Sequence record: NC_010153.1 | Strand: one strand, 5' to 3' | DNA: 36,895 bases | Shown: in pieces, positions 2,441 to 36,895 of the stretch | How the letters are laid out: each line of letters starts with the position of its first letter | Position numbering within the stretch: position 1 is the first letter of the stretch | Notes under the pieces: model-generated | Seen by the model: the letters and a program-made list of their open reading frames with translations, nothing else | Told to the model about the DNA's origin: nothing | Databases searched by the model: none | Position numbers and translations under genes: made by a program

Positions 2441-4218
2441 CTACAGATCACCTCAACCATTTTTTCACCTAGTACCGACTTTGCCGTTGTCTTGTTTGTG
2501 CACAGTTCCGTCTTATTATGTATTCCAGCTCTCATTAACTGTACTGCTCTCTTTCTTCCAATACCCGGTAATCTGACCAACGCCAGCGCTTCGCTTGGGA
2601 CTCCATATCTAGTTTCTAGATAGAGCATTTGTAGCTTTTTCGCTAGCTCTACTTTCCCGAGTGCTTTTGATATTCTATATACACCGTATGTTTGCCATGC
2701 TAATGTTTCTACTAGTTTGTTCAAGTCATGTAGTGACATTCCTTTTGTGCTTTTCACGATGATCTTGTCATCAACTCCTTTTATCCAGTTTTCGAAGATT
2801 GTTCTCACGTTTTCGCCTTTTGACGCATCCATCACATTTCTGTTTTCTAATACTGCATTCACGATGTCTTCTACTGTTGCATTGTCTCTGTCCAACACGT
2901 CTTTGTATGCTATTGCGTCTCTAACGTCAAAGTATGATTCAGCAACAGCTCTTCCGTAAGTCGTTGTGTAATATCCTGTATTATCGTGTCCTAGAATTTT
3001 TGCTTCAACTAGTTTGTTTGTTGTCTCTATTATTTCGCCTTCGCTTAGGTCTTTGAAGGACAGGGTATATTTTGTGATTCTCTTTAGCTCATCTTCTTTC
3101 ATATACACGTATTTGGATACTGTTGCAAGTATGAAGTCCTCTAAAACGTGATGCGGTGTTAGACTTCCATAGTCTACGTTGAAGTAACGCCTTGCTAATT
3201 TCTCAGCTTCTTTTATGTCGGTTGCTTCAATTACGCAAAGTCCTTCTTCATCATAGCCTGGTCTTCCTGCACGTCCGCAAATTTGATCGAATTCGATTGG
3301 TGTTAGTGATCTCCATCCTATAAATCGTCCGTATTCGATGATAGGCAATTTTAGATCGTCGAAAATGACGGCATAGAATGGGAAGTTTACGCCTTGACCT
3401 AGGGCTGTTGTCGTGATGATGATGTTGTACTTACCAGCTTTTGTCTCCTCTAGTAGTCTCAGTTTTGCGTCAGGTTCTAATCCGGCATGGAAGAACGCAA
3501 CTCTTTCTCTGTATCTTTTATCGTAAATGAGGTAGAGTTCTTCAGCTTTTTTCCTAGTACTGGTGAAGATCATGACTACTTTTCCTTTTTTCGTTAGTTT
3601 TGTAACGAGGTCATCTTTCATTTCTATCTTATCACCGTCCTCGAAAAATAGTGTTTTTCCTATTTTTATTGCCTTGTAAATGGGAATTGGTCTTTCGTCA
3701 GTTTGTAATACTTCAGCATTTGTCACGTTTGCGATCTTGTCTATGTCAGGAATTGTTGCGCTCATCATTATCAATCGTATTCCTTCGTTCATTGCGTATG
3801 CCATGAGATTCTCGATTGCTTTTCCTCTTTCTTTGTCGCCAACGTTGTGTATCTCGTCTATGATAATCATTTTCACGTTATTTGTCCATCCGTAATGTCT
3901 CCTCAGTACTGCATCAGCTTTCTCGTACGTCGTGAAGATGATCTTGGCGTCAATGTTCTCGGGGTCTTCGTCGTAAACTTCGCTAGTTAACGCTGTGGTT
4001 GGTGTCGTTGTCGAGATTTTCTTCTGGAAGTCGTCGTTCAACTGTAGGGCTAATGCTTTCAAGGGGACTGTATAAAGTACTCTTCCGTTTGCTTCGTTGG
4101 AGAGAAGCATTGCTAGGAATGATTTTCCTGTGCCGGTTGGTGCCGAGATCAGTATATTCTTGTTTGTGTTGTGGAATACGTCAATCACTCTCTTTTGGAA
4201 TTCACTGAGCTTTACCAT
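2437..4218 (-). CDS. SF2 Ski2/Hel308-like helicase, about 593 aa
   Basis: Walker A APTGTGKS, DEIH, SAT, FFHAGL, QICGRAGR, C-terminal HhH LPGIGRKRA. Start moved to ATG 4218, after SD-like GGTGGGA. Confidence 0.92.
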   Translation of the reverse strand: MVKLSEFQKRVIDVFHNTNKNILISAPTGTGKSFLAMLLSNEANGRVLYTVPLKALALQLNDDFQKKISTTTPTTALTSEVYDEDPENIDAKIIFTTYEKADAVLRRHYGWTNNVKMIIIDEIHNVGDKERGKAIENLMAYAMNEGIRLIMMSATIPDIDKIANVTNAEVLQTDERPIPIYKAIKIGKTLFFEDGDKIEMKDDLVTKLTKKGKVVMIFTSTRKKAEELYLIYDKRYRERVAFFHAGLEPDAKLRLLEETKAGKYNIIITTTALGQGVNFPFYAVIFDDLKLPIIEYGRFIGWRSLTPIEFDQICGRAGRPGYDEEGLCVIEATDIKEAEKLARRYFNVDYGSLTPHHVLEDFILATVSKYVYMKEDELKRITKYTLSFKDLSEGEIIETTNKLVEAKILGHDNTGYYTTTYGRAVAESYFDVRDAIAYKDVLDRDNATVEDIVNAVLENRNVMDASKGENVRTIFENWIKGVDDKIIVKSTKGMSLHDLNKLVETLAWQTYGVYRISKALGKVELAKKLQMLYLETRYGVPSEALALVRLPGIGRKRAVQLMRAGIHNKTELCTNKTTAKSVLGEKMVEVICR

Positions 4219-4700: not shown

Positions 4701-5246
4701 TTACTTTAATGCCTCATACTGTTTTTTTAGTGATAAGAGCTGGCTAGGGTGTACAAGGACTAGCATTGGTTGCGGGTAGTCGGATTGTTGGTATGCTATC
4801 CCGACGATTACGGCGCCTTGTTTTAGCTTTGGTACCACTGATCTCAATAACGAGTAGTATACTCCTTGTGATGTTGAGAATAGATAGACTTCCTTCTTCT
4901 TACTATTTATTTCCTTTACTAGTTCAATTGGTAGCGTTTGTTGGTCTTGTATTACGTTGGTTATTTTTTCTATTAACTGATCGTCAGTAATTACGTATCC
5001 GTCGATATAACTCACCTGTCCTGCCTGGTTAGTCTTATTGAATATGACGTCCCTAATTTCCACTTTCTTTACAATTAGCAATTTCCATACGTACTTGTTT
5101 AGATTTTCTCTCTGGAATGGTAACACAAATTCTTCCGATTTTGCTTCCTCTTGTAATTCTACTTTTTGTACTTGTGTTTCTTCTGGCATTTCGTCAGTCT
5201 CTTCGTCTTCTTTCAATTCCTCTTTTATTTTGCTCTTTTCTACCAT
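4701..5246 (-). CDS. Hypothetical protein, 181 aa (acidic N-terminus; possible ssDNA-binding protein)
   Basis: ORF track; SD GAGGTGGTGA; lies in the helicase/nuclease operon. Confidence 0.8.
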   Translation of the reverse strand: MVEKSKIKEELKEDEETDEMPEETQVQKVELQEEAKSEEFVLPFQRENLNKYVWKLLIVKKVEIRDVIFNKTNQAGQVSYIDGYVITDDQLIEKITNVIQDQQTLPIELVKEINSKKKEVYLFSTSQGVYYSLLRSVVPKLKQGAVIVGIAYQQSDYPQPMLVLVHPSQLLSLKKQYEALK

Positions 5247-5389
5247 TTTCTCACCACCTCTTTTATCTCTTCAGGATATGTATCCCAAAGTTGACAGAAT
5301 TCTAAAAAAACTTTTTCCGAACTGCTTAATGCCTCCAAGGGTAACCCTTGGGGGTTGATTATTTTTTCGCATTCCTCGAAGCTGGGCAT
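5240..5389 (-). CDS. Unannotated 49-aa ORF MPSFEECEKIINPQGLPLEALSSSEKVFLEFCQLWDTYPEEIKEVVRKW
   Basis: Manual translation; TTTAAATA TATA box at about 5420-5427; stop overlaps the start of the 181-aa gene; below the ORF-track cutoff. Confidence 0.65.
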   Translation of the reverse strand: MPSFEECEKIINPQGLPLEALSSSEKVFLEFCQLWDTYPEEIKEVVRKW

Positions 5390-5479
5390 TTTCTCGCCTA
5401 TTGTAGAATGTAGTAAAACAAATATTTAAACATTTCCCCTCATTAAGCTTTATATACTAGTTTGTAGTACTATATTTTA

Positions 5480-5719
5480 GTGGTTCAAATGGAGAAAAAC
5501 ATTGAGGAGGAAATTAAAGAAAAGATAAAAGATAGGATAACGCATGATGGGTTCTTTAGTTCTAGTATTTTGTTATTTAAAATAGATGAGAAGGCGGGAA
5601 TTTTTTATGTCTTGGCTGAGACAGAATCATGTGTTGCTGTAATAGAAAGGGGAAAATACGTCGTTTCTGGAAATTCGTTTTTTATAGAACTTAGTACGGG
5701 AGAAAAATTTTATATCTAA
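5480..5719 (+). CDS. Hypothetical protein, 79 aa
   Basis: ORF track; TTTATATA box at about 5449-5456. Confidence 0.7.
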   Translation: MVQMEKNIEEEIKEKIKDRITHDGFFSSSILLFKIDEKAGIFYVLAETESCVAVIERGKYVVSGNSFFIELSTGEKFYI

Positions 5720-5722
5720 AAG

Positions 5723-6157
5723 TTATTTTATTCTTATTTTTTTGAGTATCCTTCTTGTTAATATGTATATTGTTCTAATTGCTTTTTTCTTTTCGTTTTC
5801 ATCATCAATTTTCTGTGCTAGTTCCGCTAATGTGTTTATCATCGTTATTATTTCATCAATCTCTTTTTTCTCAATTTCATAAGTGTATCTTAGATCTACT
5901 GCGATTTCGTAAGCTTTCTTGATTTCTTGTTGTAGTTTTAATGTTGTTGCTATTTTTTCTCCTTGTTCAGTTAACAATGCGATATCTTGTAATTTGTTTT
6001 TCTCTTTATCAAAATTTATTTTTATTTCTGTCAATCCTTTTTTTATCAAGCTATTTATTATTCTCCTTGTTTTTCCTTCTCTAATTTCAATTTCTTTTTT
6101 ATCAAATAAGTAAATAAGAATTCGTTTTTCGCCGTTTGACAATTTTGTTTCCAACAT
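5723..6157 (-). CDS. Winged-helix (MarR-like) DNA-binding protein with helical C-terminus, about 144 aa
   Basis: LSNGEKRILIYL...IINSLIKKGLTEI...ALLTEQGEKIA is a wHTH pattern; SD AAGGTGG before ATG 6157. Confidence 0.7.
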   Translation of the reverse strand: MLETKLSNGEKRILIYLFDKKEIEIREGKTRRIINSLIKKGLTEIKINFDKEKNKLQDIALLTEQGEKIATTLKLQQEIKKAYEIAVDLRYTYEIEKKEIDEIITMINTLAELAQKIDDENEKKKAIRTIYILTRRILKKIRIK

Positions 6158-6198
6158 AGTACCACCTTTAGTTTGTAAGAAATAGGAATAGAAAAAAA

Positions 6199-6528
6199 TT
6201 ATTGAATTTCGAATAACCAAAGTTCATATCCTATTTTTTCCAGTTCTTCTGTCGTTTTAATTACGACACCTTCTGGTAACCTTTGCTTTAAAGAAAATGC
6301 TATAATTTTGTCTCCGTGCGTTGCTCTGATGGCTATTCGGTTTACTGGGACATTAACTCCTAAGACGTTTGTAAGCAATTCTGCTGTTGCTTGGTGACCT
6401 ATAGCGGACGTGAAGTTCTCTTTTTTCACTAATTCTCTTGCTTCTTCAATGCTTATCTGTCTTGCCTTTACGGTATACTCCTCCCCTGGTTTTAGGGGGA
6501 GGATTTGGGCATTTAAAATGTATAGCAT
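6199..6528 (-). CDS. acrIII-1: AcrIII-1 family viral ring nuclease (DUF1874, AFV3-109-like), 109 aa
   Basis: MLYILN start, SAIGH45QATA catalytic GH motif, VNR and QRLPEG motifs typical of the family. Confidence 0.9.
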   Translation of the reverse strand: MLYILNAQILPLKPGEEYTVKARQISIEEARELVKKENFTSAIGHQATAELLTNVLGVNVPVNRIAIRATHGDKIIAFSLKQRLPEGVVIKTTEELEKIGYELWLFEIQ

Positions 6529-6647
6529 ATGTTGTAGTGTATTTTTGAGATATATAAATTTTTCTTTAGCCGAAAAACGGAAGAATCTTTGTTTTCGTTC
6601 TTTATGAAGAGAAAAAGGGAAAAATAAAAAAAGGGAATGACTTTTAA

Positions 6648-7319
6648 TTAATCCGCTTTCCTAACGGGTGGGTGAACGAGTAGATAAATACCTTTCTCTA
6701 GTACTATGGGATTATGGTCTTCGCTTTTGATCTCTAGTTTATCTTCTACGTTTACTAGTATTCCGTCACCAGCATGAATTAATTTTACTTGCCCTTCGGC
6801 ATAATGGTTGTATAAGATTAACGGATAGTCGTAAAATTCTAGGTAGTCCGGTATCGATTCTACCTTGTAAATCTCCAAATGCCCTTGTTCTATGAACGGT
6901 TCCGATACATAGGTTGGCGCTTTGTGCGCTAGGTATACTGTTATCCCGTAATTAGTAAACGTTACTAAATATTTTCTTCCTGTCGTTAGTGTTCTCAGAA
7001 AGTTTCCAAATGTTTTTAGAAACACTTCAGGGATTACTAGCTTGTCTCTTGTGAACTTGCTATCGCTCTCAACATATAGTTTTTGCCAATCCTCAATCCA
7101 TAATCCTCTCACTATTTTCGCTTCAATATTTCCGTTTTCGTCTATCCAAATTCTGTAACATCCTTCACTACTCATTCCACTATTACTGATGTATAATTTG
7201 CAGTCTATAACGTTCCTGTCGTTGCCTATTTTAATTTTGTAGATCCATCCAGTCTTCCCTTTTAATTGGAAAACCGGGGGTTCCGGTAGTTCCGGTACTC
7301 GAATTTGTTGAGACTCCAT
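6648..7319 (-). CDS. Hypothetical protein, 223 aa, C-terminal HxxH/IxLxxGxY...D motif
   Basis: ORF track; own promoter and SD GGGGATAGT; C-terminus IKSEDHNPIVLEKGIYLLVHPPVRKAD resembles the 122-aa RQGD protein. Confidence 0.85.
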   Translation of the reverse strand: MESQQIRVPELPEPPVFQLKGKTGWIYKIKIGNDRNVIDCKLYISNSGMSSEGCYRIWIDENGNIEAKIVRGLWIEDWQKLYVESDSKFTRDKLVIPEVFLKTFGNFLRTLTTGRKYLVTFTNYGITVYLAHKAPTYVSEPFIEQGHLEIYKVESIPDYLEFYDYPLILYNHYAEGQVKLIHAGDGILVNVEDKLEIKSEDHNPIVLEKGIYLLVHPPVRKAD

Positions 7320-7369
7320 ACTATCCCCTCCACTTATAAATTAGGAAAAAAGGATATATAAATGTTTCT
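7317..7369 (-). promoter_or_regulatory. Promoter/5'UTR cassette shared with the gene at 8660-9013
   Basis: ggatatataaatgtttct is identical at 7352-7369 and 9044-9061; catactatcccct is identical at 7317-7329 and 9011-9023. Confidence 0.8.
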
Positions 7370-7445
7370 TCTGTGGTTTATTTCAAGAAGATGAGAGAAA
7401 TAGAAAAGATAGAAGATATGAGTTGATAGAAAAACAAAAAATGTC

Positions 7446-7931
7446 TTAAGCTTCAGAAAGTTTTATGATTCCAAACCCTTTGTTCTTTTTTGCCCCTATT
7501 TTCAATAAAATCGGTAGTTTTATTTCTTGATTAAATATCAGTGTGGTGTTAGTCTTTGATCCTGCAATCAAATATTCATAGTTTGTCAGTGAATTGACAA
7601 CTTTCCTTGTTCCTATTCTCACATAATCTTTGGGGAATGTTATTATTCCTGAAACCACTGCATTTTGATATTGTGGGTATTGTGTTCTTAATGCTCCAGT
7701 TATAGTAAATGATGGTATGATGATGTTGCATAATGCGTCTCTGTCAAAGGCACGGTCTACATGGTCAATAAGTTCATGAAATTCTTCAGGGTAGCACTTC
7801 TTTAGATCTTGCAATTGTAATTTTTTCATCGCTTTGTTGGGACTCAGCGAAGGTGCAATCACTGGCGTTAATATTTCGATTATAATATTTTTCGTAAAGT
7901 TGTTGTTTTGTTTATTGTTAGTTTGTGCCAT
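7446..7931 (-). CDS. Minimal RAMP-superfamily (Cas7/Csm3-like) protein, 161 aa
   Basis: Three RAMP hallmarks in order: beta1 IIIEILTPV; VD59RAFDRD...IIPSFTITGALR (cf. Csm3 D..vrd...IPGSSLKGxxR); C-terminal G-rich loop IG146AKKNKG152FG154IIKL. Confidence 0.82.
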   Translation of the reverse strand: MAQTNNKQNNNFTKNIIIEILTPVIAPSLSPNKAMKKLQLQDLKKCYPEEFHELIDHVDRAFDRDALCNIIIPSFTITGALRTQYPQYQNAVVSGIITFPKDYVRIGTRKVVNSLTNYEYLIAGSKTNTTLIFNQEIKLPILLKIGAKKNKGFGIIKLSEA

Positions 7932-7953
7932 ACGTTTATATTAGTAGAAAAGC

Positions 7954-7968
7954 TATATAAGCTTTTTG
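7954..7968 (-). promoter_or_regulatory. BRE-TATA promoter of the RAMP gene (probably leaderless)
   Basis: Minus strand AAAAAGCTTATATA ends 22 nt upstream of ATG 7931. Confidence 0.7.
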
Positions 7969-8012
7969 CGAGTGGTTTTCGAAAACTTTATAAGATTCTG
8001 AGTGTATATTTT

Positions 8013-8111
8013 GTTGCCCGAAAGAAGATGAGGGCGTGAGAGTTGCGATTTATGTCATCGTTGCTATTCCTCTTGACGTGAACCCCGGCGTTGTGGGGCG
8101 ATATGTCTTTT
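8013..8111 (+). ncRNA. Putative small RNA 1 (8 hexamers, 8036-8083)
   Basis: TGCCC/GGGCG 5' stem; T at 8037, 8043, 8049, 8055, 8061, 8067, 8073, 8079; CCCC/GGGG 3' stem; T-run 8108-8111. Ends are inferred. Confidence 0.72.
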
Positions 8112-8147
8112 ATCCGAAAGTTTTATAAGATTCTAAGCGCATATCTT

Positions 8148-8252
8148 ATCGCCCGATAAATGATGAGGGCGTGAGAGTTAAGGTGTATGTTATCGTTATT
8201 TTGACCGTTCACATGACCATGAACCCCGGCGTTGTGGGGCGATAATTCTTTT
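8148..8252 (+). ncRNA. Putative small RNA 2 (9 hexamers, 8171-8224)
   Basis: CGCCC/GGGCG stem; T every 6 nt from 8172 to 8220; 3' stem; T-rich end. Ends are inferred. Confidence 0.75.
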
Positions 8253-8291
8253 CTTTAACGAAAGTTTTATAAGATTCTAAGCGCATATCTT

Positions 8292-8385
8292 ATCGCCCGA
8301 TAAATGATGAGGGCGTTGTGATTTGTGTTGTTATTACGATACACGTTCTCATGAGCCCCACTTCCGTGGGGCGATATGTCTTTTT
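8292..8385 (+). ncRNA. Putative small RNA 3 (7 hexamers, 8315-8356)
   Basis: Same 5' stem; T every 6 nt from 8316 to 8352; perfect GCCCCAC-ttcc-GTGGGGC hairpin; T5 at 8381-8385. Confidence 0.75.
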
Positions 8386-8423
8386 CATGACGAAAATTTT
8401 ATAATATTCAAAGTTAAAGTGTT

Positions 8424-8520
8424 ATCGCCCGATAATAGATGAGGGCGTTGCGATTCGTTTTGCTTTTGTGGTACACGTTTTCATGAACCCCACGGGGGTG
8501 GGGCGATAATTCTTGTTTAT
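8424..8520 (+). ncRNA. Putative small RNA 4 (7 hexamers, 8447-8488)
   Basis: Same 5' stem; T every 6 nt from 8448 to 8484; CCCCAC-gggg-GTGGGG hairpin; T-rich tail; no in-frame start codon near the putative 5' end. Confidence 0.75.
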
Positions 8521-8659
8521 TCCCTTTTTTTCTCACTTTGCAAATATTTTTACTATTCTGGACTTTGAAAAATATTGAAAGATAGAAGAAAGAATAAAGT
8601 AGAAAAAATATCCAAAAAGTGAAAAAAATGAAGTATAAAAAATAAAATAGGGAAAAAAA

Positions 8660-9013
8660 TCATTTGACTTGAATCCATCCTTTGTTACTTTTGAATACGT
8701 AGAAATATGTGTCTTTCCATTCTTCGTGATCCGAGTCTTCAGTTACTTTTATTACAACTTCTCTTGTTTTTGGAATTATGGCAACGTCTCTTACTAACGT
8801 TTTTCCGTAATTCTCTTCTTTCTCTTTCAATGTTATTGCGATAACGTCTCCGTATAGTATACTGTATTTCCTAACGAACCAGTCGAAATTACTAGTGTCG
8901 TCTATTGTCTCTATTTCCAGAATAAAGTTTCTCTCCGGCTCATTTTTTTCTGCTTTTTGAATTAATTCTTTTAGTTCTTCTTCGCTTATTTCATTATTTA
9001 GTTCCTGTTGCAT
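8660..9013 (-). CDS. Acidic hypothetical protein, 117 aa (anti-defence candidate by context)
   Basis: ORF track; promoter/SD cassette identical to that of the 223-aa gene. Confidence 0.85.
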   Translation of the reverse strand: MQQELNNEISEEELKELIQKAEKNEPERNFILEIETIDDTSNFDWFVRKYSILYGDVIAITLKEKEENYGKTLVRDVAIIPKTREVVIKVTEDSDHEEWKDTYFYVFKSNKGWIQVK

Positions 9014-9187
9014 ACTATCCCCTGCTAATAATATATAGCAAATGGATATATAAATGTTTCTCTATTATATTCTCTTTTTAAAGAGAGGGGGATATTCTCT
9101 TTTTCTCCTTTCTCTGAAAGAAAAATTGGATTGATAATAGTATCATGATTTTTGCTTTAAATAGTATTACTGTGTAATTATCTAATT

Positions 9188-9340
9188 ATGAGCCTAGAAT
9201 ATGAAATTCTAAAAGTTGAGTGCAAAGAAAATAACTGTTTTATTACCTTGAAGTTAATAAGAAATGGCACAGTAGAGATTTTCAACTCTGTACCAATTGA
9301 AAATATAAACAAACTGATAGAGAATTTCTCATTTTTTTAG
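9188..9340 (+). CDS. Unannotated 50-aa ORF MSLEYEILKVECKENNCFITLKLIRNGTVEIFNSVPIENINKLIENFSFF
   Basis: Manual translation; TTTAAATA at 9156-9163, 24 nt upstream; T-run at the stop. Confidence 0.6.
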   Translation: MSLEYEILKVECKENNCFITLKLIRNGTVEIFNSVPIENINKLIENFSFF

Positions 9341-9399
9341 TCGAAAAATAATTTTTGATTCTGTGTAATACTGAATTGGTTTTCTTTACATATAGGAAA

Positions 9400-9725
9400 A
9401 AGTTTACACTTATCTTATCACAATTTTACTAGTTGTACTTATACTTTAGTAATCTAGTTTACACTTAGTTTTTTTGAAATGTTATCGGTGTGCTCATTTT
9501 TTATTCCAAGAGGAGAGATTAATTAACGTTTGTCTGCACAAAATTCTACTATTCTAGTTTATACTTTTGTAGGCAAATTTAAATTGTAAACCAGGCGGGA
9601 AAGTCTTGTAATTGTCAAGTTTGAATTATAATAAAAGAATTGAGAGGATTAGAAAATTATGAAGAGGAGTGAGATCAATTAACGTTTGTCTGCACAAAAA
9701 CCTACTAGACTTACTTATACTTTAC
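9400..9725. repeat. Intergenic direct repeats (candidate origin or protein-binding sites)
   Basis: 23-nt exact repeat aattaacgtttgtctgcacaaaa at 9521-9543 and 9677-9699 with similar flanks; RYTTAYACTT motif at 9402, 9437, 9457, 9557, 9713. Confidence 0.7.
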
Positions 9726-9964
9726 TATTCAGATATACGCTTAGCTGATTTACAATTAATATAGAAATTTTATTACAAAAATTTGAAAAATTGCTTATGA
9801 ACTTACTTATTGCCCCAATTTAGGGTATTTTCTCACTCTAGAACAAAGTTTTTAAGCAATTTTTATATTATACATGATATATTTTGTAAAGCGCAATAAA
9901 GTGATCTTAATGTGGAGAAAAAGATATATAAGCTTATAATCAAATATATATAGTAGGGGAGAGT

Positions 9965-10219
9965 ATGCAAGAAGGAAACGTGACAATAAAAGTGACTGAA
10001 GAGGAAACAAGAAAGAGATTAGAAAAAGAATTAGAAAAACTAGAAAAGGTAAACGAAATTTTAGATAATGTAAATAAAGTTATGGCGGAGTTAAGTGATA
10101 CATGTCATATGGCGATAGAGTCAATGCCAAGCGTAAGAAAAGAATTAATAGAACAGTGTTCAAATGTTCAGAAACAATTATACAAACTATATGATATAAT
10201 TTCTGATACAGTATATTAA
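9965..10219 (+). CDS. Coiled-coil hypothetical protein, 84 aa
   Basis: ORF track; TATA boxes and SD GGGGAGAGT upstream; T-run terminator downstream. Confidence 0.8.
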   Translation: MQEGNVTIKVTEEETRKRLEKELEKLEKVNEILDNVNKVMAELSDTCHMAIESMPSVRKELIEQCSNVQKQLYKLYDIISDTVY

Positions 10220-10412
10220 AGTCAATTCTCTTTTTTTTATTCTTCTTTCATTCTTGATGGAGAGAATTCTGAGTTATACTATTATACATATATTATATAT
10301 ATGAATTATGTGTTTTCTCTCATTCTTGATGAAGAGAATGAGACAACATGCATTATTCATATATATAATATATGTATAATAGTTGCCAGAAAAAGTTCAA
10401 GGAAAAACGATT

Positions 10413-12092
10413 TTATTTTGATTCAAAAATTATACCTTCATATTCTTTCATTACAAAGCTATATCTTTGGTCAAACTGTCTCTGAAAGATTTCGTGATTA
10501 TATGCTATATCTAATATTATCCCTTTCTGTTTATTTTTATACGGGCGCATTACCCGCCCTATCCTCTGGACCAACTTTATTCGGCTTTTCCCTTGTGATA
10601 GTAATATAATCAATTTTAGATTTGGAATGTCCAGCCCTTCATCCGCAAGACTTGTAGCTATTAATGTTTGTATTTTGCCATTTTTCAGATTTTCTATTTT
10701 TCTCATTCTTTCCTCAAGTTTTGTTTGAGAAGTTACGTAATCCGCACTAATTCCATTTTGGTTAAACAACTCTGATAATTTCTTAGCAGTGCTAATTCTT
10801 CTAACAATTATTAGTGCCGGATACGAGTTTATTTCTTTTATTTTTTCTAGTATTTGCATGTTTGTACCTGGCGAATTTTCAAATAACCTCAGCAATAATG
10901 AGTAATATTTTGCAAATTCCATGTCATCTTTTTCTTTTTCCAATTTCTTTATTTTCTCTTTCAATTTCTTTGGAACTTCTGGTACAAATGGAATGTACTC
11001 TAGAGGCACTAAATAGTGATTTTTAACTAGTTCCTGATAATTAATGGAATATGATATTCTTCCTAGTAATCCTGTAATTTCTAAATCTCTTCCGTCTTCT
11101 CTGAAGGGAGTGGCGGTTAAGCCTAGGCGTATTGAATTTGGCGCATCAACTAGCAAAGATTTGATACTACTGGTGGGCGTATGGTGTGCCTCGTCTATTA
11201 TTATTAAGTTCGAATTATTAATAATATCTCTAAGCTTATCGTTTTTTCCTCTTTTCTTTTGCGAATAATAGTAAGATATTGATAATGCTATAAGATTGCT
11301 ATCTTTTTCTTTTTTCAATTCATTAATTTCACCTGATACTATCGCAAAGTCTAGATCTTCTCTTTTTGCAAACTGTTGAAATTGTTTCAAGAGTGTAGTT
11401 GAATTTACTGCGTATACAATTTTAGAATTTTTCTTGTTTTTCAGCATTTGTAACGCTGATATTATTGCAATTACAGATTTTCCAGAGCCCGTTGGAGCTT
11501 TTATTATTCCAGTGCCAATTATGTTAACATCAGAAAGCCATGATCTTATTGAATTTATCTGGTAATCTCTTAACTCAAAGTTTTTCAATGTAATGTCGTG
11601 AAAACTGAAATTGGCAAATGGTTTTATTTTTATCTCATTGGTATTTAACAATCTCCAGTATAACCCTCTATAAGTTACGAAGAAATTGTAATGTTCCCAT
11701 GCTAACAATATTTCTTCTTCTTCATATTTTCCTCTGTCATAATCGAATTTCTTTAGCTTATATGTCAATAATTTTTTGTATTTCTCAAGATCATCGTAAA
11801 TATAAATATAGTTCCCTTTGATTTTGGCAAACACAATTTCTTTCGTAGAATTAATGTAAGGCGATAATATATTGTAAATTTCTTCTCCGATATAATCTTT
11901 CAAGAAATCCGCAATTCTTTTCAATTCTTCTTTTTCAATCCTGGAAATTTTAAGCTCGTTCAAATACCAGGTCTTGGTACTTGGATCAAAGTCCGCAATT
12001 TCTTTTATCGCTAGTAGGTATTCTCTAAATTCGTCTTTCTCTAAATACTTTGTTAGTTTAGGGATAGGAATTTTATTATTGTTAAAAGACAT
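10413..12092 (-). CDS. SF2 helicase, XPB/Rad25/UvsW-like, about 559 aa
   Basis: LRDYQ Q-motif, APTGSGKS, DEAHH, GLTATPFREDG, EGLDIP, QRIGRVMR. Start placed at ATG 12092 after SD GGTGA (ORF track uses GTG 12107). Confidence 0.92.
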   Translation of the reverse strand: MSFNNNKIPIPKLTKYLEKDEFREYLLAIKEIADFDPSTKTWYLNELKISRIEKEELKRIADFLKDYIGEEIYNILSPYINSTKEIVFAKIKGNYIYIYDDLEKYKKLLTYKLKKFDYDRGKYEEEEILLAWEHYNFFVTYRGLYWRLLNTNEIKIKPFANFSFHDITLKNFELRDYQINSIRSWLSDVNIIGTGIIKAPTGSGKSVIAIISALQMLKNKKNSKIVYAVNSTTLLKQFQQFAKREDLDFAIVSGEINELKKEKDSNLIALSISYYYSQKKRGKNDKLRDIINNSNLIIIDEAHHTPTSSIKSLLVDAPNSIRLGLTATPFREDGRDLEITGLLGRISYSINYQELVKNHYLVPLEYIPFVPEVPKKLKEKIKKLEKEKDDMEFAKYYSLLLRLFENSPGTNMQILEKIKEINSYPALIIVRRISTAKKLSELFNQNGISADYVTSQTKLEERMRKIENLKNGKIQTLIATSLADEGLDIPNLKLIILLSQGKSRIKLVQRIGRVMRPYKNKQKGIILDIAYNHEIFQRQFDQRYSFVMKEYEGIIFESK

Positions 12093-36479: not shown

Positions 36480-36895
36480 AATACAAAAGGTAGAACAAAA
36501 AATAAGATAGAGAGAGCAAATGATATAGGGCACGACGACACGAGATACAGACTGAGCAAACGAGAGCAAATGACGAGGAACGAAAGACGAGAAACGAGAG
36601 ACAAAGAAAGGGAAACAATGACATAGGGTACTACGAACGAAAATACGACAAACGATAAACAAAAGAACGGGAAATGAGAACGAGAAACAATGACATAGAG
36701 TACTAACGAACGAGACGTGAAGAACGAGAAAATGAGAGACGAGGAACGAAGAAGGAAACGATGACGTAGGATACTAACGAACGAGAAACAAGAAACGAGG
36801 AAATGAGAAACTAGAAACTAGATACTAAATACGAGATACATGACACGAAGATACGAGATACTAGATACGAGATACTAAGGAACTAGATACTAGAC
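36480..36895. repeat. Right subterminal low-complexity region with ~72-nt degenerate tandem repeats
   Basis: (A/G)ATGACRTAG.(G/A)TACTA.CGAACGA at 36617, 36689, 36760 (looser copy at 36519); many ACGAGA words; CTAGATAC at 36818, 36861, 36883. Confidence 0.8.

Follow-up and report, generated by a model that had tools for sequence, protein, structure and literature searches.

The complete genome of Acidianus filamentous virus 7 (AFV7; Betalipothrixvirus pezzuloense; AM087122 / NC_010153; host Acidianus convivator) constitutes the 36,895-nucleotide (nt) window analysed here. We propose that its open reading frame (ORF) ORF161 (AFV7_gp13) and the four RNA units beside it form one virus-borne RNA-protein module, in which a minimal Cas7-type RAMP would act with its own guide-like RNAs of ~100 nt, and we give this reading a probability of roughly 0.6. 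The module is probably a hexamer-coded, RNA-guided ribonucleoprotein that resembles both the VIPR systems and the Cas7 backbone of CRISPR effectors. In the sequence record ORF161 is annotated only as a hypothetical protein and the 730 nt that separate it from the next gene, ORF117, are unannotated; no ORF of at least 60 amino acids (aa) was found across the RNA array, which is the sole large-period tandem array of the AFV7 genome. A first-pass annotation, made from the DNA sequence, had drawn attention to the locus and supposed that it was undescribed as a system. Indeed, we found no description of it in the literature on AFV7, ORF161 and RAMP or Cas7 proteins of archaeal viruses, and ORF161 may be contained in the PSI-BLAST set of the VIPR authors. 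The observation is real and non-random, and its interpretation stood wherever a computational test could be applied. The features of the module are as follows.

7446-7931, minus strand: ORF161 (AFV7_gp13), predicted minimal Cas7-type RAMP of 161 aa (ORF call, AlphaFold2, Foldseek and profile).
7953-7961, minus strand: putative TATA box CTTATATAG for a near-leaderless ORF161 mRNA, divergent from unit 1 (recognised as a motif).
7987-8113, plus strand: RNA unit 1, with TATA at 7987-7994, 5' hairpin at 8015-8036 (UGCCC-GAAAGAAGAUGA-GGGCG), 7 hexamers and UGAA at 8037-8082, 3' hairpin at 8083-8098 and T-run at 8108-8111.
8121-8256, plus strand: RNA unit 2, with TATA at 8121, 5' hairpin at 8150-8171 (CGCCC-GAUAAAUGAUGA-GGGCG), 8 hexamers and UGAA at 8172-8223, 3' hairpin at 8224-8239 and a T-run.
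8265-8388, plus strand: RNA unit 3, with TATA at 8265, 5' hairpin at 8294-8315, 6 hexamers and UGAG at 8316-8355, 3' hairpin at 8356-8371 (CCCCAC-UUCC-GUGGGG) and a T-run.
8397-8530, plus strand: RNA unit 4, with TATA at 8397, 5' hairpin at 8426-8447, 6 hexamers and UGAA at 8448-8487, 3' hairpin at 8488-8503 (CCCCAC-GGGG-GUGGGG) and a T-rich terminator region.

ORF161 can be assigned as a minimal Cas7-like RAMP because of the fold matches of its predicted structure and its profile alignment to the Cas7-Cas5-Cas11 fusion 8s9t_A, which bears out the leftward 161-aa RAMP gene of the first-pass annotation. No curated family covers the protein in Pfam, NCBIfam or PHROGs; Pfam gives sub-threshold hints, namely RAMPs at E 0.05, placed exactly on the C-terminal G-loop, and Cas6_C at E 0.08. 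An exhaustive HMMER search over 1.84 billion representative proteins returned 19 matches at E<=1e-3, of which about 17 are true members with lengths of 160-215 aa. All 21 aligned sequences share the residues H57, D59, F62, R64, G95, E119, K151, G152 and G154, and the family is marked by the motifs HxDRxFxR and GAxKxKGxG, the latter corresponding in ORF161 to the C-terminal G-rich loop GAKKNKGFG (146-154). The AlphaFold2 model, built with the family alignment, reached a predicted local distance difference test score (pLDDT) of 93.8 and a predicted template-modelling score (pTM) of 0.84, and it contains a beta-hairpin (104-121) that bears the invariant E119 and is a candidate for a thumb hairpin, the element of Cas7 proteins that intercalates at every sixth nt. 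When this model was compared with the PDB by Foldseek, the top matches were all Cas7-type backbone subunits (type VII Cas7, type III-A Csm3, type III-B Cmr4), with probability 1.0, E 6e-5 to 1e-3 and a query template-modelling (TM) score of ~0.58, the best being type VII Cas7 8yhe_J (E 5.9e-5, query TM 0.58). On these matches the protein has the RRM (ferredoxin-like) core of the RAMP superfamily. Among viral models the close relatives were ORF161 itself and the homologue of Los Azufres archaeal virus 2 (LAAV2) only, with a few phage RAMPs next. The family profile matches the Cas7 domain of 8s9t_A at E 3.4e-5, by way of its invariant 'xD-R-x-F-x-R ... P..(S/T)GALR' and G-loop motifs: the profile segment 'lDraFeRdaeCnpfipgtvlsgaLr' is aligned to LDSVVQRDGDNLPYIPGKTLTGILR, the helix-1 motif IIPSFTITGALR (ORF161 71-82) to PYIPGKTLTGILR, and the G-loop to GGKRRRGNG. 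In this alignment the invariant D59 stands opposite the Asp in the 'LD...RD...P.IPG' segment of the 8s9t_A Cas7 domain; we take this to be the place of the target-RNA-cleaving Asp of type III Csm3/Cmr4 and treat it as a lead only.

The RNA units share a strict layout. Each is opened by a TATA-like TTTATAAG/TTTTATAA, the first of which lies 56 nt from the ORF161 ATG, in accordance with the four tandem rightward units said to begin about 55 nt upstream of that codon. The promoter motif reads in full as a GAAA(R)TTTATAAGATTC resembling a transcription factor B recognition element (BRE) with its TATA box, and the start of the TATA is constantly 29-30 nt ahead of the hairpin GCCC. The 5' hairpin of AFV7 has a 5-bp stem and a 12-nt loop, (U/C)GCCC-GAnnnnn(A/G)AUGA-GGGCG, and at the other end UGAA or UGAG runs into a CCCC...GGGG hairpin, followed by CGAUA and then by the T-run. 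Units 1-4 hold 7, 8, 6 and 6 full hexamers, to which the terminal UGAA/UGAG together with the first CC of the 3' hairpin adds one more; the resulting 8, 9, 7 and 7 agree with the 7-9 hexamers per unit that had been counted before. The units are spaced as a 132-144-bp tandem repeat and none matches an Rfam family, even at E<=5. Their description as individually promoted stands, at the level of motifs, for the AFV7 clade and has to be withdrawn for distant members, where the units abut.

The six-nucleotide phasing was measured by a likelihood-ratio statistic, expressed as z against shuffles (2000 shuffles for AFV7), with the register counted from the first nt after the stem. The AFV7 tracts have a period of 6 with z=17.1, a value reached by 0/2000 shuffles, and z=0.18 at period 5, so that the 6-nt rather than 5-nt grammar proposed at first sight was upheld. 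Of the 27 hexamers of AFV7, all 27 have T at position 1, 24 have T or G at position 2 and 23 end with a purine at position 6. Across the clades of the family the period-6 signal ranges from z 2.0 to 21.8 (L011 6.2, L026 7.1, L010 4.5, L025 2.0 and LAAV2 21.8, where L-numbers designate homologue loci), and the period-5 signal is significant in none of them (z -0.8 to 1.5). As a control, vrRNA1 of SUSP1, a genuine VIPR RNA, gave the reverse (period-5 z=11.6, period-6 z=-0.2). Pooling 24 distinct units, we found a pyrimidine at position 1 in 204 of 211 hexamers, the exceptions lying beyond the tract ends, and a register that starts at the nt after the 5-bp stem in all 24 units and also in LAAV2. 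Where related units are of unequal length, the difference is a whole number of hexamers. Over 13 orthologous unit pairs the mismatch fraction at positions 1-6 is 0, 0.31, 0.29, 0.30, 0.12 and 0.40. With no mismatch at position 1 and 0.12-0.40 at the others, one position is therefore fixed while the remainder drift.

The hairpin that sets this register is conserved as an RNA structure. When 21 distinct 5' hairpins were aligned, pairing over the five stem pairs came to 97%, compensatory double changes occurred at 5/5 of them (GCCC/GGGC, GGGG/CCCC, ACCC/GGGU, GCCA/UGGC), and the covariation score was reached by 0/500 column shuffles; shifting the partner by 1-3 columns drops pairing to 40-60%. 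Several stems depend on G-U pairs, which indicates that the plus-strand RNA is the form under constraint. The loop nucleotides G6, A7, U15, G16 and A17 are invariant and define a GA...UGA loop. The 3' hairpin covaries at its fifth and sixth pairs (CCCCAC/GUGGGG, CCCCGU/ACGGGG, CCCCG/CGGGG); it is absent in LAAV2 and none was seen in L010, L025 and L026.

A further structure was considered and rejected. The ViennaRNA minimum-energy fold of units 2-4 is a terminal stem of 9-10 bp, UUAUCGCCC/GGGCGAUAA (8145-8254, 8289-8387, 8421-8518). As a conserved element it does not hold, in that a 5'-strand change of L006 unit 3 and L005 is compensated only in the local hairpin, and in L011 the outer strands are both G-rich and unable to pair. 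Possibly this stem is a closed state particular to the clade, or else a side effect of stem sequences that the two hairpins have in common.

The association of the RAMP gene with such units extends over its family. All homologue loci with enough flank carry a 5' hairpin and a pyrimidine-phased hexamer tract, only L009 and L024 being uninformative (contig end or abutting gene), and the pairing persists at 25-84% protein identity across at least 3 kinds of archaeal virus or mobile element. The absence of units beside homologues was the outcome most damaging to the first-pass annotation, and every locus with usable flanks has them. Briefly, the short metagenomic contigs L003, L004, L005, L006 and L007 (59-84% identity) carry the same units upstream of the RAMP gene, in divergent orientation to it. 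LAAV2 (30% identity) is a different kind of virus with fusellovirus-like genes, and has seven abutting units of the form AUCCGGAnCnnUGAAGGA plus hexamers directly downstream of its RAMP gene, with C at hexamer position 1 in 48/55. The group L011/L012/L013/L029 (~35% identity) belongs to a 20-33-kb element with virus-like genes, and shows 3 units downstream and 2 upstream of the RAMP gene, of the form AGGGG-GAUAUCAAGAUGA-CCCCU followed by Y-phased hexamers and UGA-CCCC-loop-GGGG. The identities of the loci from LAAV2 and the L011 group onwards, with L010, L025 and L026, span 25-37%. L010 has one unit with about 15 phased hexamers; L025 has UACCC-GAACGGUGA-GGGUA with 9 hexamers, all U-initial; and L026 (25% identity) has CACCC-GAACUAUGAUGA-GGGUG with 22 consecutive pyrimidine-initial hexamers. 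In the distant members the units abut and have no promoter of their own, and the hairpin and the phased tract are kept.

Two observations on single loci may be added. The upstream array of L011 opens (3945-4020) with a unit whose stem is a variant, AGGGU/ACCCU, and which lacks the 3' hairpin and continues into the next unit. L005 (GCA_026627345.1, JAPNUP010000006.1) is a 1.3-kb contig with a RAMP of 59% identity, a single RNA unit and a homologue of ORF117, filed in a metagenome-assembled genome of a 'Firmicutes bacterium'; it is probably a mis-binned archaeal-virus fragment. No member of the ORF161 family was found in 185,579 species-representative genomes, and IMG/VR gave AFV7 itself only. 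The family seems to be rare and limited to viruses and mobile elements of hot springs.

The module can be compared with several known systems. Cas7-family subunits in Cascade, Csm and Cmr bind 6 nt each and flip out every sixth base. ORF161 shares with these backbones (Csm3, Cmr4, type VII) its best structural matches, the helix-1 motif, the G-rich loop and the 6-nt step; it differs in being much smaller, with 161 aa, and in standing outside a cas operon, without Cas5, Cas6, Cas10, Cas11, CRISPR repeats or spacers. Moreover, the RNA of the AFV7 family is under constraint to have a pyrimidine at each sixth nt, whereas the spacers of CRISPR RNAs (crRNAs) are unconstrained. A CRISPR array consists of direct repeats of 23-50 nt and unique, unconstrained spacers, and the AFV7 units, of 132-144 nt and with putative promoters of their own, are unlike it. 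Sulfolobales viruses carry mini-CRISPR arrays, short arrays of guide-like units that are thought to serve inter-virus conflict, and the arrays of LAAV2 and L011 are superficially repeat-spacer-like in the same manner; the repeats of the AFV7 family, however, are not host CRISPR repeats, the virus provides its own RAMP, and the 'spacers' are 6-nt phased inside and evolve by mutation, not by acquisition. We found no CRISPR-like array in the window, no cas genes among the annotated AFV7 genes flanking the module (5000-11000), and no cas Pfam family on record for any of the genes called in the fetched L011 locus. The statement that the window is devoid of CRISPR repeats and of Cas1/2, Cas5 and Cas6 is correct for the array and for other backbone cas genes and needs one amendment, since a Cas4-like protein, ORF203, is encoded. 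This nuclease (1829-2440), annotated as CRISPR/Cas-associated, is a core lipothrixvirus gene shared with AFV3 and is unrelated to the RAMP-RNA module.

The closest counterpart is VIPR, to which the first-pass annotation had pointed and whose literature is real, with pentamer RNAs only. A VIPR system consists of the RAMP Vipr and of vrRNAs that contain 9-16 pentamers of the form YNNGG. Each repeat is bound by one protomer, which keeps GGY sequestered, the Y lying in a pocket that excludes purines; the NN pair with double-stranded DNA, skipping 1 nt, and competing phages and satellites are silenced (bioRxiv 10.64898/2026.04.26.720920; 10.64898/2026.04.26.720927). At the SUSP1 locus, vipr (KT454805 28474-29061) has YNNGG arrays on both sides. 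The AFV7 family resembles VIPR in its solitary minimal viral RAMP without CRISPR array or other backbone cas genes (AFV7, LAAV2, L011/L029), in the neighbouring RNAs of ~100 nt, built from short tandem repeats with fixed and variable positions in alternation, and, in L011, in having units both upstream and downstream of the gene, as in SUSP1. It differs in a repeat of 6 nt instead of 5, a fixed part of one pyrimidine with a U-biased neighbour instead of GGY, 4-5 variable positions per repeat instead of 2, a register set by a 5' hairpin, conserved and with a GA...UGA loop, where VIPR has a conserved 3' tail, and its carriers, which are thermoacidophilic archaeal viruses. The module lacks two published hallmarks of VIPR, the pentamer and the 3' tail, and one hallmark of CRISPR Cas7, the cas/CRISPR context. 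Since the pairing of gene and units recurs in distant relatives, it looks like an undescribed 6-nt cousin of the 5-nt VIPR.

Taken together, a step of 6 nt, the Cas7 fold and a hairpin that sets the frame indicate a Cas7-like filament, for which we suggest the following working scheme. Each AFV7 unit would be transcribed from its own archaeal TATA promoter and would end at the T-run. In LAAV2 and L011 the units abut and must therefore be cut from a precursor, presumably one transcript, either by a host nuclease or by the RAMP itself, for which the invariant His/Asp pair would be suitable. The 5' hairpin with its GA...UGA loop, as a counterpart of the crRNA handle, would nucleate assembly and fix the register, and ORF161 would then polymerise from 5' to 3' with one protomer per hexamer, in the way of Cas7, Csm3 and Cmr4 on crRNA. 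At each subunit boundary the position-1 pyrimidine, often followed by U, would be held or flipped, as compared with the Y3 pocket in VIPR, and the other 4-5 variable nt of the hexamer would be displayed for base pairing. The 3' hairpin may cap the filament in the AFV7 and L011 clades, and the filament would count 7-9 protomers in AFV7 and up to ~22 in a relative. Once loaded, it would most likely bind a nucleic acid complementary to its RNA, from the host or from a mobile element in competition, and the invariant HxD motif makes cutting of the target conceivable. If VIPR and the mini-CRISPR arrays serve as analogues, the likely role would lie in conflicts with viruses or plasmids that share the cell, or in the control of host genes; this is the weakest step of the explanation.

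Targets were searched for under a range of pairing rules (contiguous, 5+1, 4+2, 4+1, 4+0, 3+n, wobble) and none was found under any of them. Fifteen guide tracts compared by blastn with 50,697 phage and archaeal-virus records returned AFV7 itself only, and zero-skip concatenations of positions 3-6 and 2-6 gave chance matches at E>=3, or none. A scan of 14 combinations of read position and target period covered AFV7 and AFV3 (complete), 20-kb central regions of AFV6, AFV8 and AFV9, a 45-kb viral contig and the LAAV2 and L011 loci, and its scores equalled those of column-shuffled guides; RNA pairing with G-U wobble against the same six lipothrixvirus sequences showed no excess over shuffled guides. 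Exact period-6 patterns of all four AFV7 guides found the array itself only in IMG/VR, and period-5 gapped patterns of the guides found nothing. Finally, a guide of L011 met only another copy of the same array in a metagenome collection, and the guide of AFV7 unit 3 met nothing in 185,579 species genomes. Exact-match scans are insensitive and hot-spring mobile elements poorly sampled, and the negative result on targets is therefore weak.

These missing targets nevertheless count against a guided module, and some further points weigh on the same side. The guide tracts are fairly conserved among related viruses, not hypervariable, with the block UUUAUG-UCAUCG-UUGCUA kept across five viruses. The tracts are T-rich, which eases a weak phasing in short ones such as that of L025 (z=2.0). 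The folding energy of unit 1 is ordinary (z=-0.6), and the ORF161 family is small, with about 17 clusters at 50% identity. Transcription of the units from their own promoters is something we infer from promoter and terminator motifs, and this for the AFV7 clade only.

Among more specific readings, the one we put forward, tentatively and at less than even odds, is that of a separate RAMP-RNA guide lineage with its own hexamer code, in which one pyrimidine is held and 4-5 nt are read per protomer, placed between VIPR and Cas7-crRNA and possibly endowed with Csm3-like cleavage via HxD. The same ribonucleoprotein might instead act without base-pair targeting, either as a decoy or anti-CRISPR that mimics host Cas7-crRNA and sequesters type I or type III subunits, or in a structural or regulatory role for the virus. 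The target-search negatives keep such a non-guiding role alive, and the moderate conservation of the guide tracts among related viruses and the position of type III and type VII backbone subunits as nearest structural neighbours agree with it. We nevertheless consider it unlikely: several different units are kept (4 in AFV7, 5 in L011, 7 in LAAV2) with differing variable positions and no single optimal binder, the number of hexamers ranges from 6 to 22, positions 2-6 diverge with position 1 alone fixed, as expected of information-carrying sequence, and the databases of hot-spring virus and Acidianus targets are thin, which makes the negative search weak evidence.

Equally improbable in our estimate is that the module is a divergent member of the published VIPR family, already covered there, with sequestered bases, gapped pairing to double-stranded DNA with a triplex, and transcriptional silencing. 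The logic of a solitary viral RAMP with adjacent repeat RNAs of ~100 nt is the same, the L011 units stand on both sides of the gene as in SUSP1, and the authors state that VIPRs occur in archaeal viruses and that repeats with a non-canonical consensus exist (bioRxiv 10.64898/2026.04.26.720920; 10.64898/2026.04.26.720927). Yet all the vrRNA variants reported in the VIPR papers are pentamers (YNNGG, NNNGG, YNNNG, NNNNG, GAC/NN and similar), and a language-model survey of periodic intergenic arrays lists periods of 5, 18 and 60-79 nt with few of 7, 8 and 10, its text being silent on 6. In the present family, moreover, period 5 is absent and period 6 strong, the fixed element is a 5' hairpin and not a 3' tail, and the conserved part of the repeat is one pyrimidine and not three nt. 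Alignment of the ORF161-family profile with the SUSP1 Vipr by hhalign gave a probability of 0.2%; the SUSP1 protein is a single representative, and RAMPs diverge too far for detection by sequence.

It is very improbable that the units are small RNAs unrelated to ORF161, such as C/D-box-like or L7Ae-binding guides, which would make the neighbourhood coincidental. Units 2 and 3 do hold a perfect C-box-like AUGAUGA in their loops, and all loops allow tandem G.A/A.G pairs by the stem, but there is no D box (CUGA), which box C/D sRNAs have near the 3' end, joined by a terminal stem to a C box (RUGAUGA) near the 5' end, no C'/D' symmetry and no Rfam match, and the units track the RAMP gene over 25-84% identity, on different virus backbones and on either side of the gene. 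A role of the repeats as DNA (promoter arrays, iterons or protein-binding sites) would suit the strong TATA/BRE-like motif of each AFV7 unit and the 132-144-bp tandem array, but it is scarcely credible given that the compensatory stem changes include G-U pairs workable only in plus-strand RNA, that a 6-nt phase mismatches the DNA helical repeat and that distant members keep the hairpin and phased tract without per-unit promoters.

The RNA-guided reading of the module would have several consequences. In 2026 VIPRs entered the literature as pre-CRISPR, RNA-guided machines that viruses carry and that use a pentamer code (bioRxiv 10.64898/2026.04.26.720920; 10.64898/2026.04.26.720927). The AFV7 family would be the VIPR idea in a different grammar, with the 6-nt step of Cas7-crRNA backbones and a frame set by a hairpin. 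If this is true, it offers a concrete intermediate for testing the origin of the CRISPR backbone from viral RAMPs, a second and denser programmable code in which each protomer reads 4-5 positions, and a minimal, thermostable system (161 aa and a 100-nt RNA); it also gives a function to a gene that has long lacked annotation and to 550 bp of 'intergenic' sequence in a cultured archaeal virus. Were the separate hexamer-code lineage to be true, it would be a missing link on the way to class 1 CRISPR effectors, and hyperthermophile viruses would be the source of a new programmable scaffold.

The surroundings of the module in AFV7 include the following features.

7405-7416, plus strand: direct repeat AAAGATAGAAGA, left copy, 12 nt (two copies only in the genome).
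8578-8589, plus strand: direct repeat AAAGATAGAAGA, right copy, 12 nt (two copies only in the genome).
8660-9013, minus strand: ORF117 (AFV7_gp14, phrog_10536), candidate accessory protein (by co-occurrence).

The two copies of AAAGATAGAAGA flank exactly ORF161 and the RNA array, which suggests that gene and array are an inserted cassette, with AAAGATAGAAGA maybe as a scar or a recombination site. The DNA similarity between AFV7 and AFV3 stops near 7392, and the syntenic site of AFV3, from the ORF223/227 gene to the ORF564 helicase, is without ORF161 and without the array.

ORF117 is positioned just outside the right copy of AAAGATAGAAGA. Its homologues adjoin the RAMP gene in L004, L005 and L011, the co-occurrence being counted over 4 loci. 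Searches of the complete AFV3 genome and of the central regions fetched for AFV6, AFV8 and AFV9, all of them relatives without the RAMP, gave none. From this co-occurrence ORF117 is a candidate accessory gene of the RAMP-RNA module, and might be a counterpart of the accessory vap gene of VIPR. Its AlphaFold2 model (pLDDT 86) has a mostly-beta fold, for which a comparison with the PDB gave nothing below E 0.04 and no recognisable DNA-binding or nuclease fold. Proteins of 227-249 aa that are 27% identical and have no known domain are encoded upstream of the RAMP gene in L009 (144-893) and L025 (1-684); the former overlaps the RAMP start codon and the latter ends ~35 nt before it. They may represent a second type of accessory gene in the L009/L025 clade.

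The loops of units 2 and 3 (8155-8166, 8299-8310) both read GAUAAAUGAUGA, which includes the C-box AUGAUGA. This loop can stack tandem G.A/A.G and U.U pairs on the stem in a K-loop-like manner, and on these sequence features it might be bound by the archaeal K-turn protein L7Ae. Purine-rich low-complexity tracts, pyrimidine-rich on the opposite strand, adjoin the arrays in AFV7 (7340-7445, 8531-8660), LAAV2 (L002 8080-8420) and L011 (4130-4200, 5790-5900). Finally, the ends of the AFV7 genome carry short tandem repeats, at 186-232 with a 22-nt unit and at 36781-36894 with the heptamer AGATACT and units of 22 and 50 nt, which are taken to be the terminal-repeat structure of lipothrixviruses.

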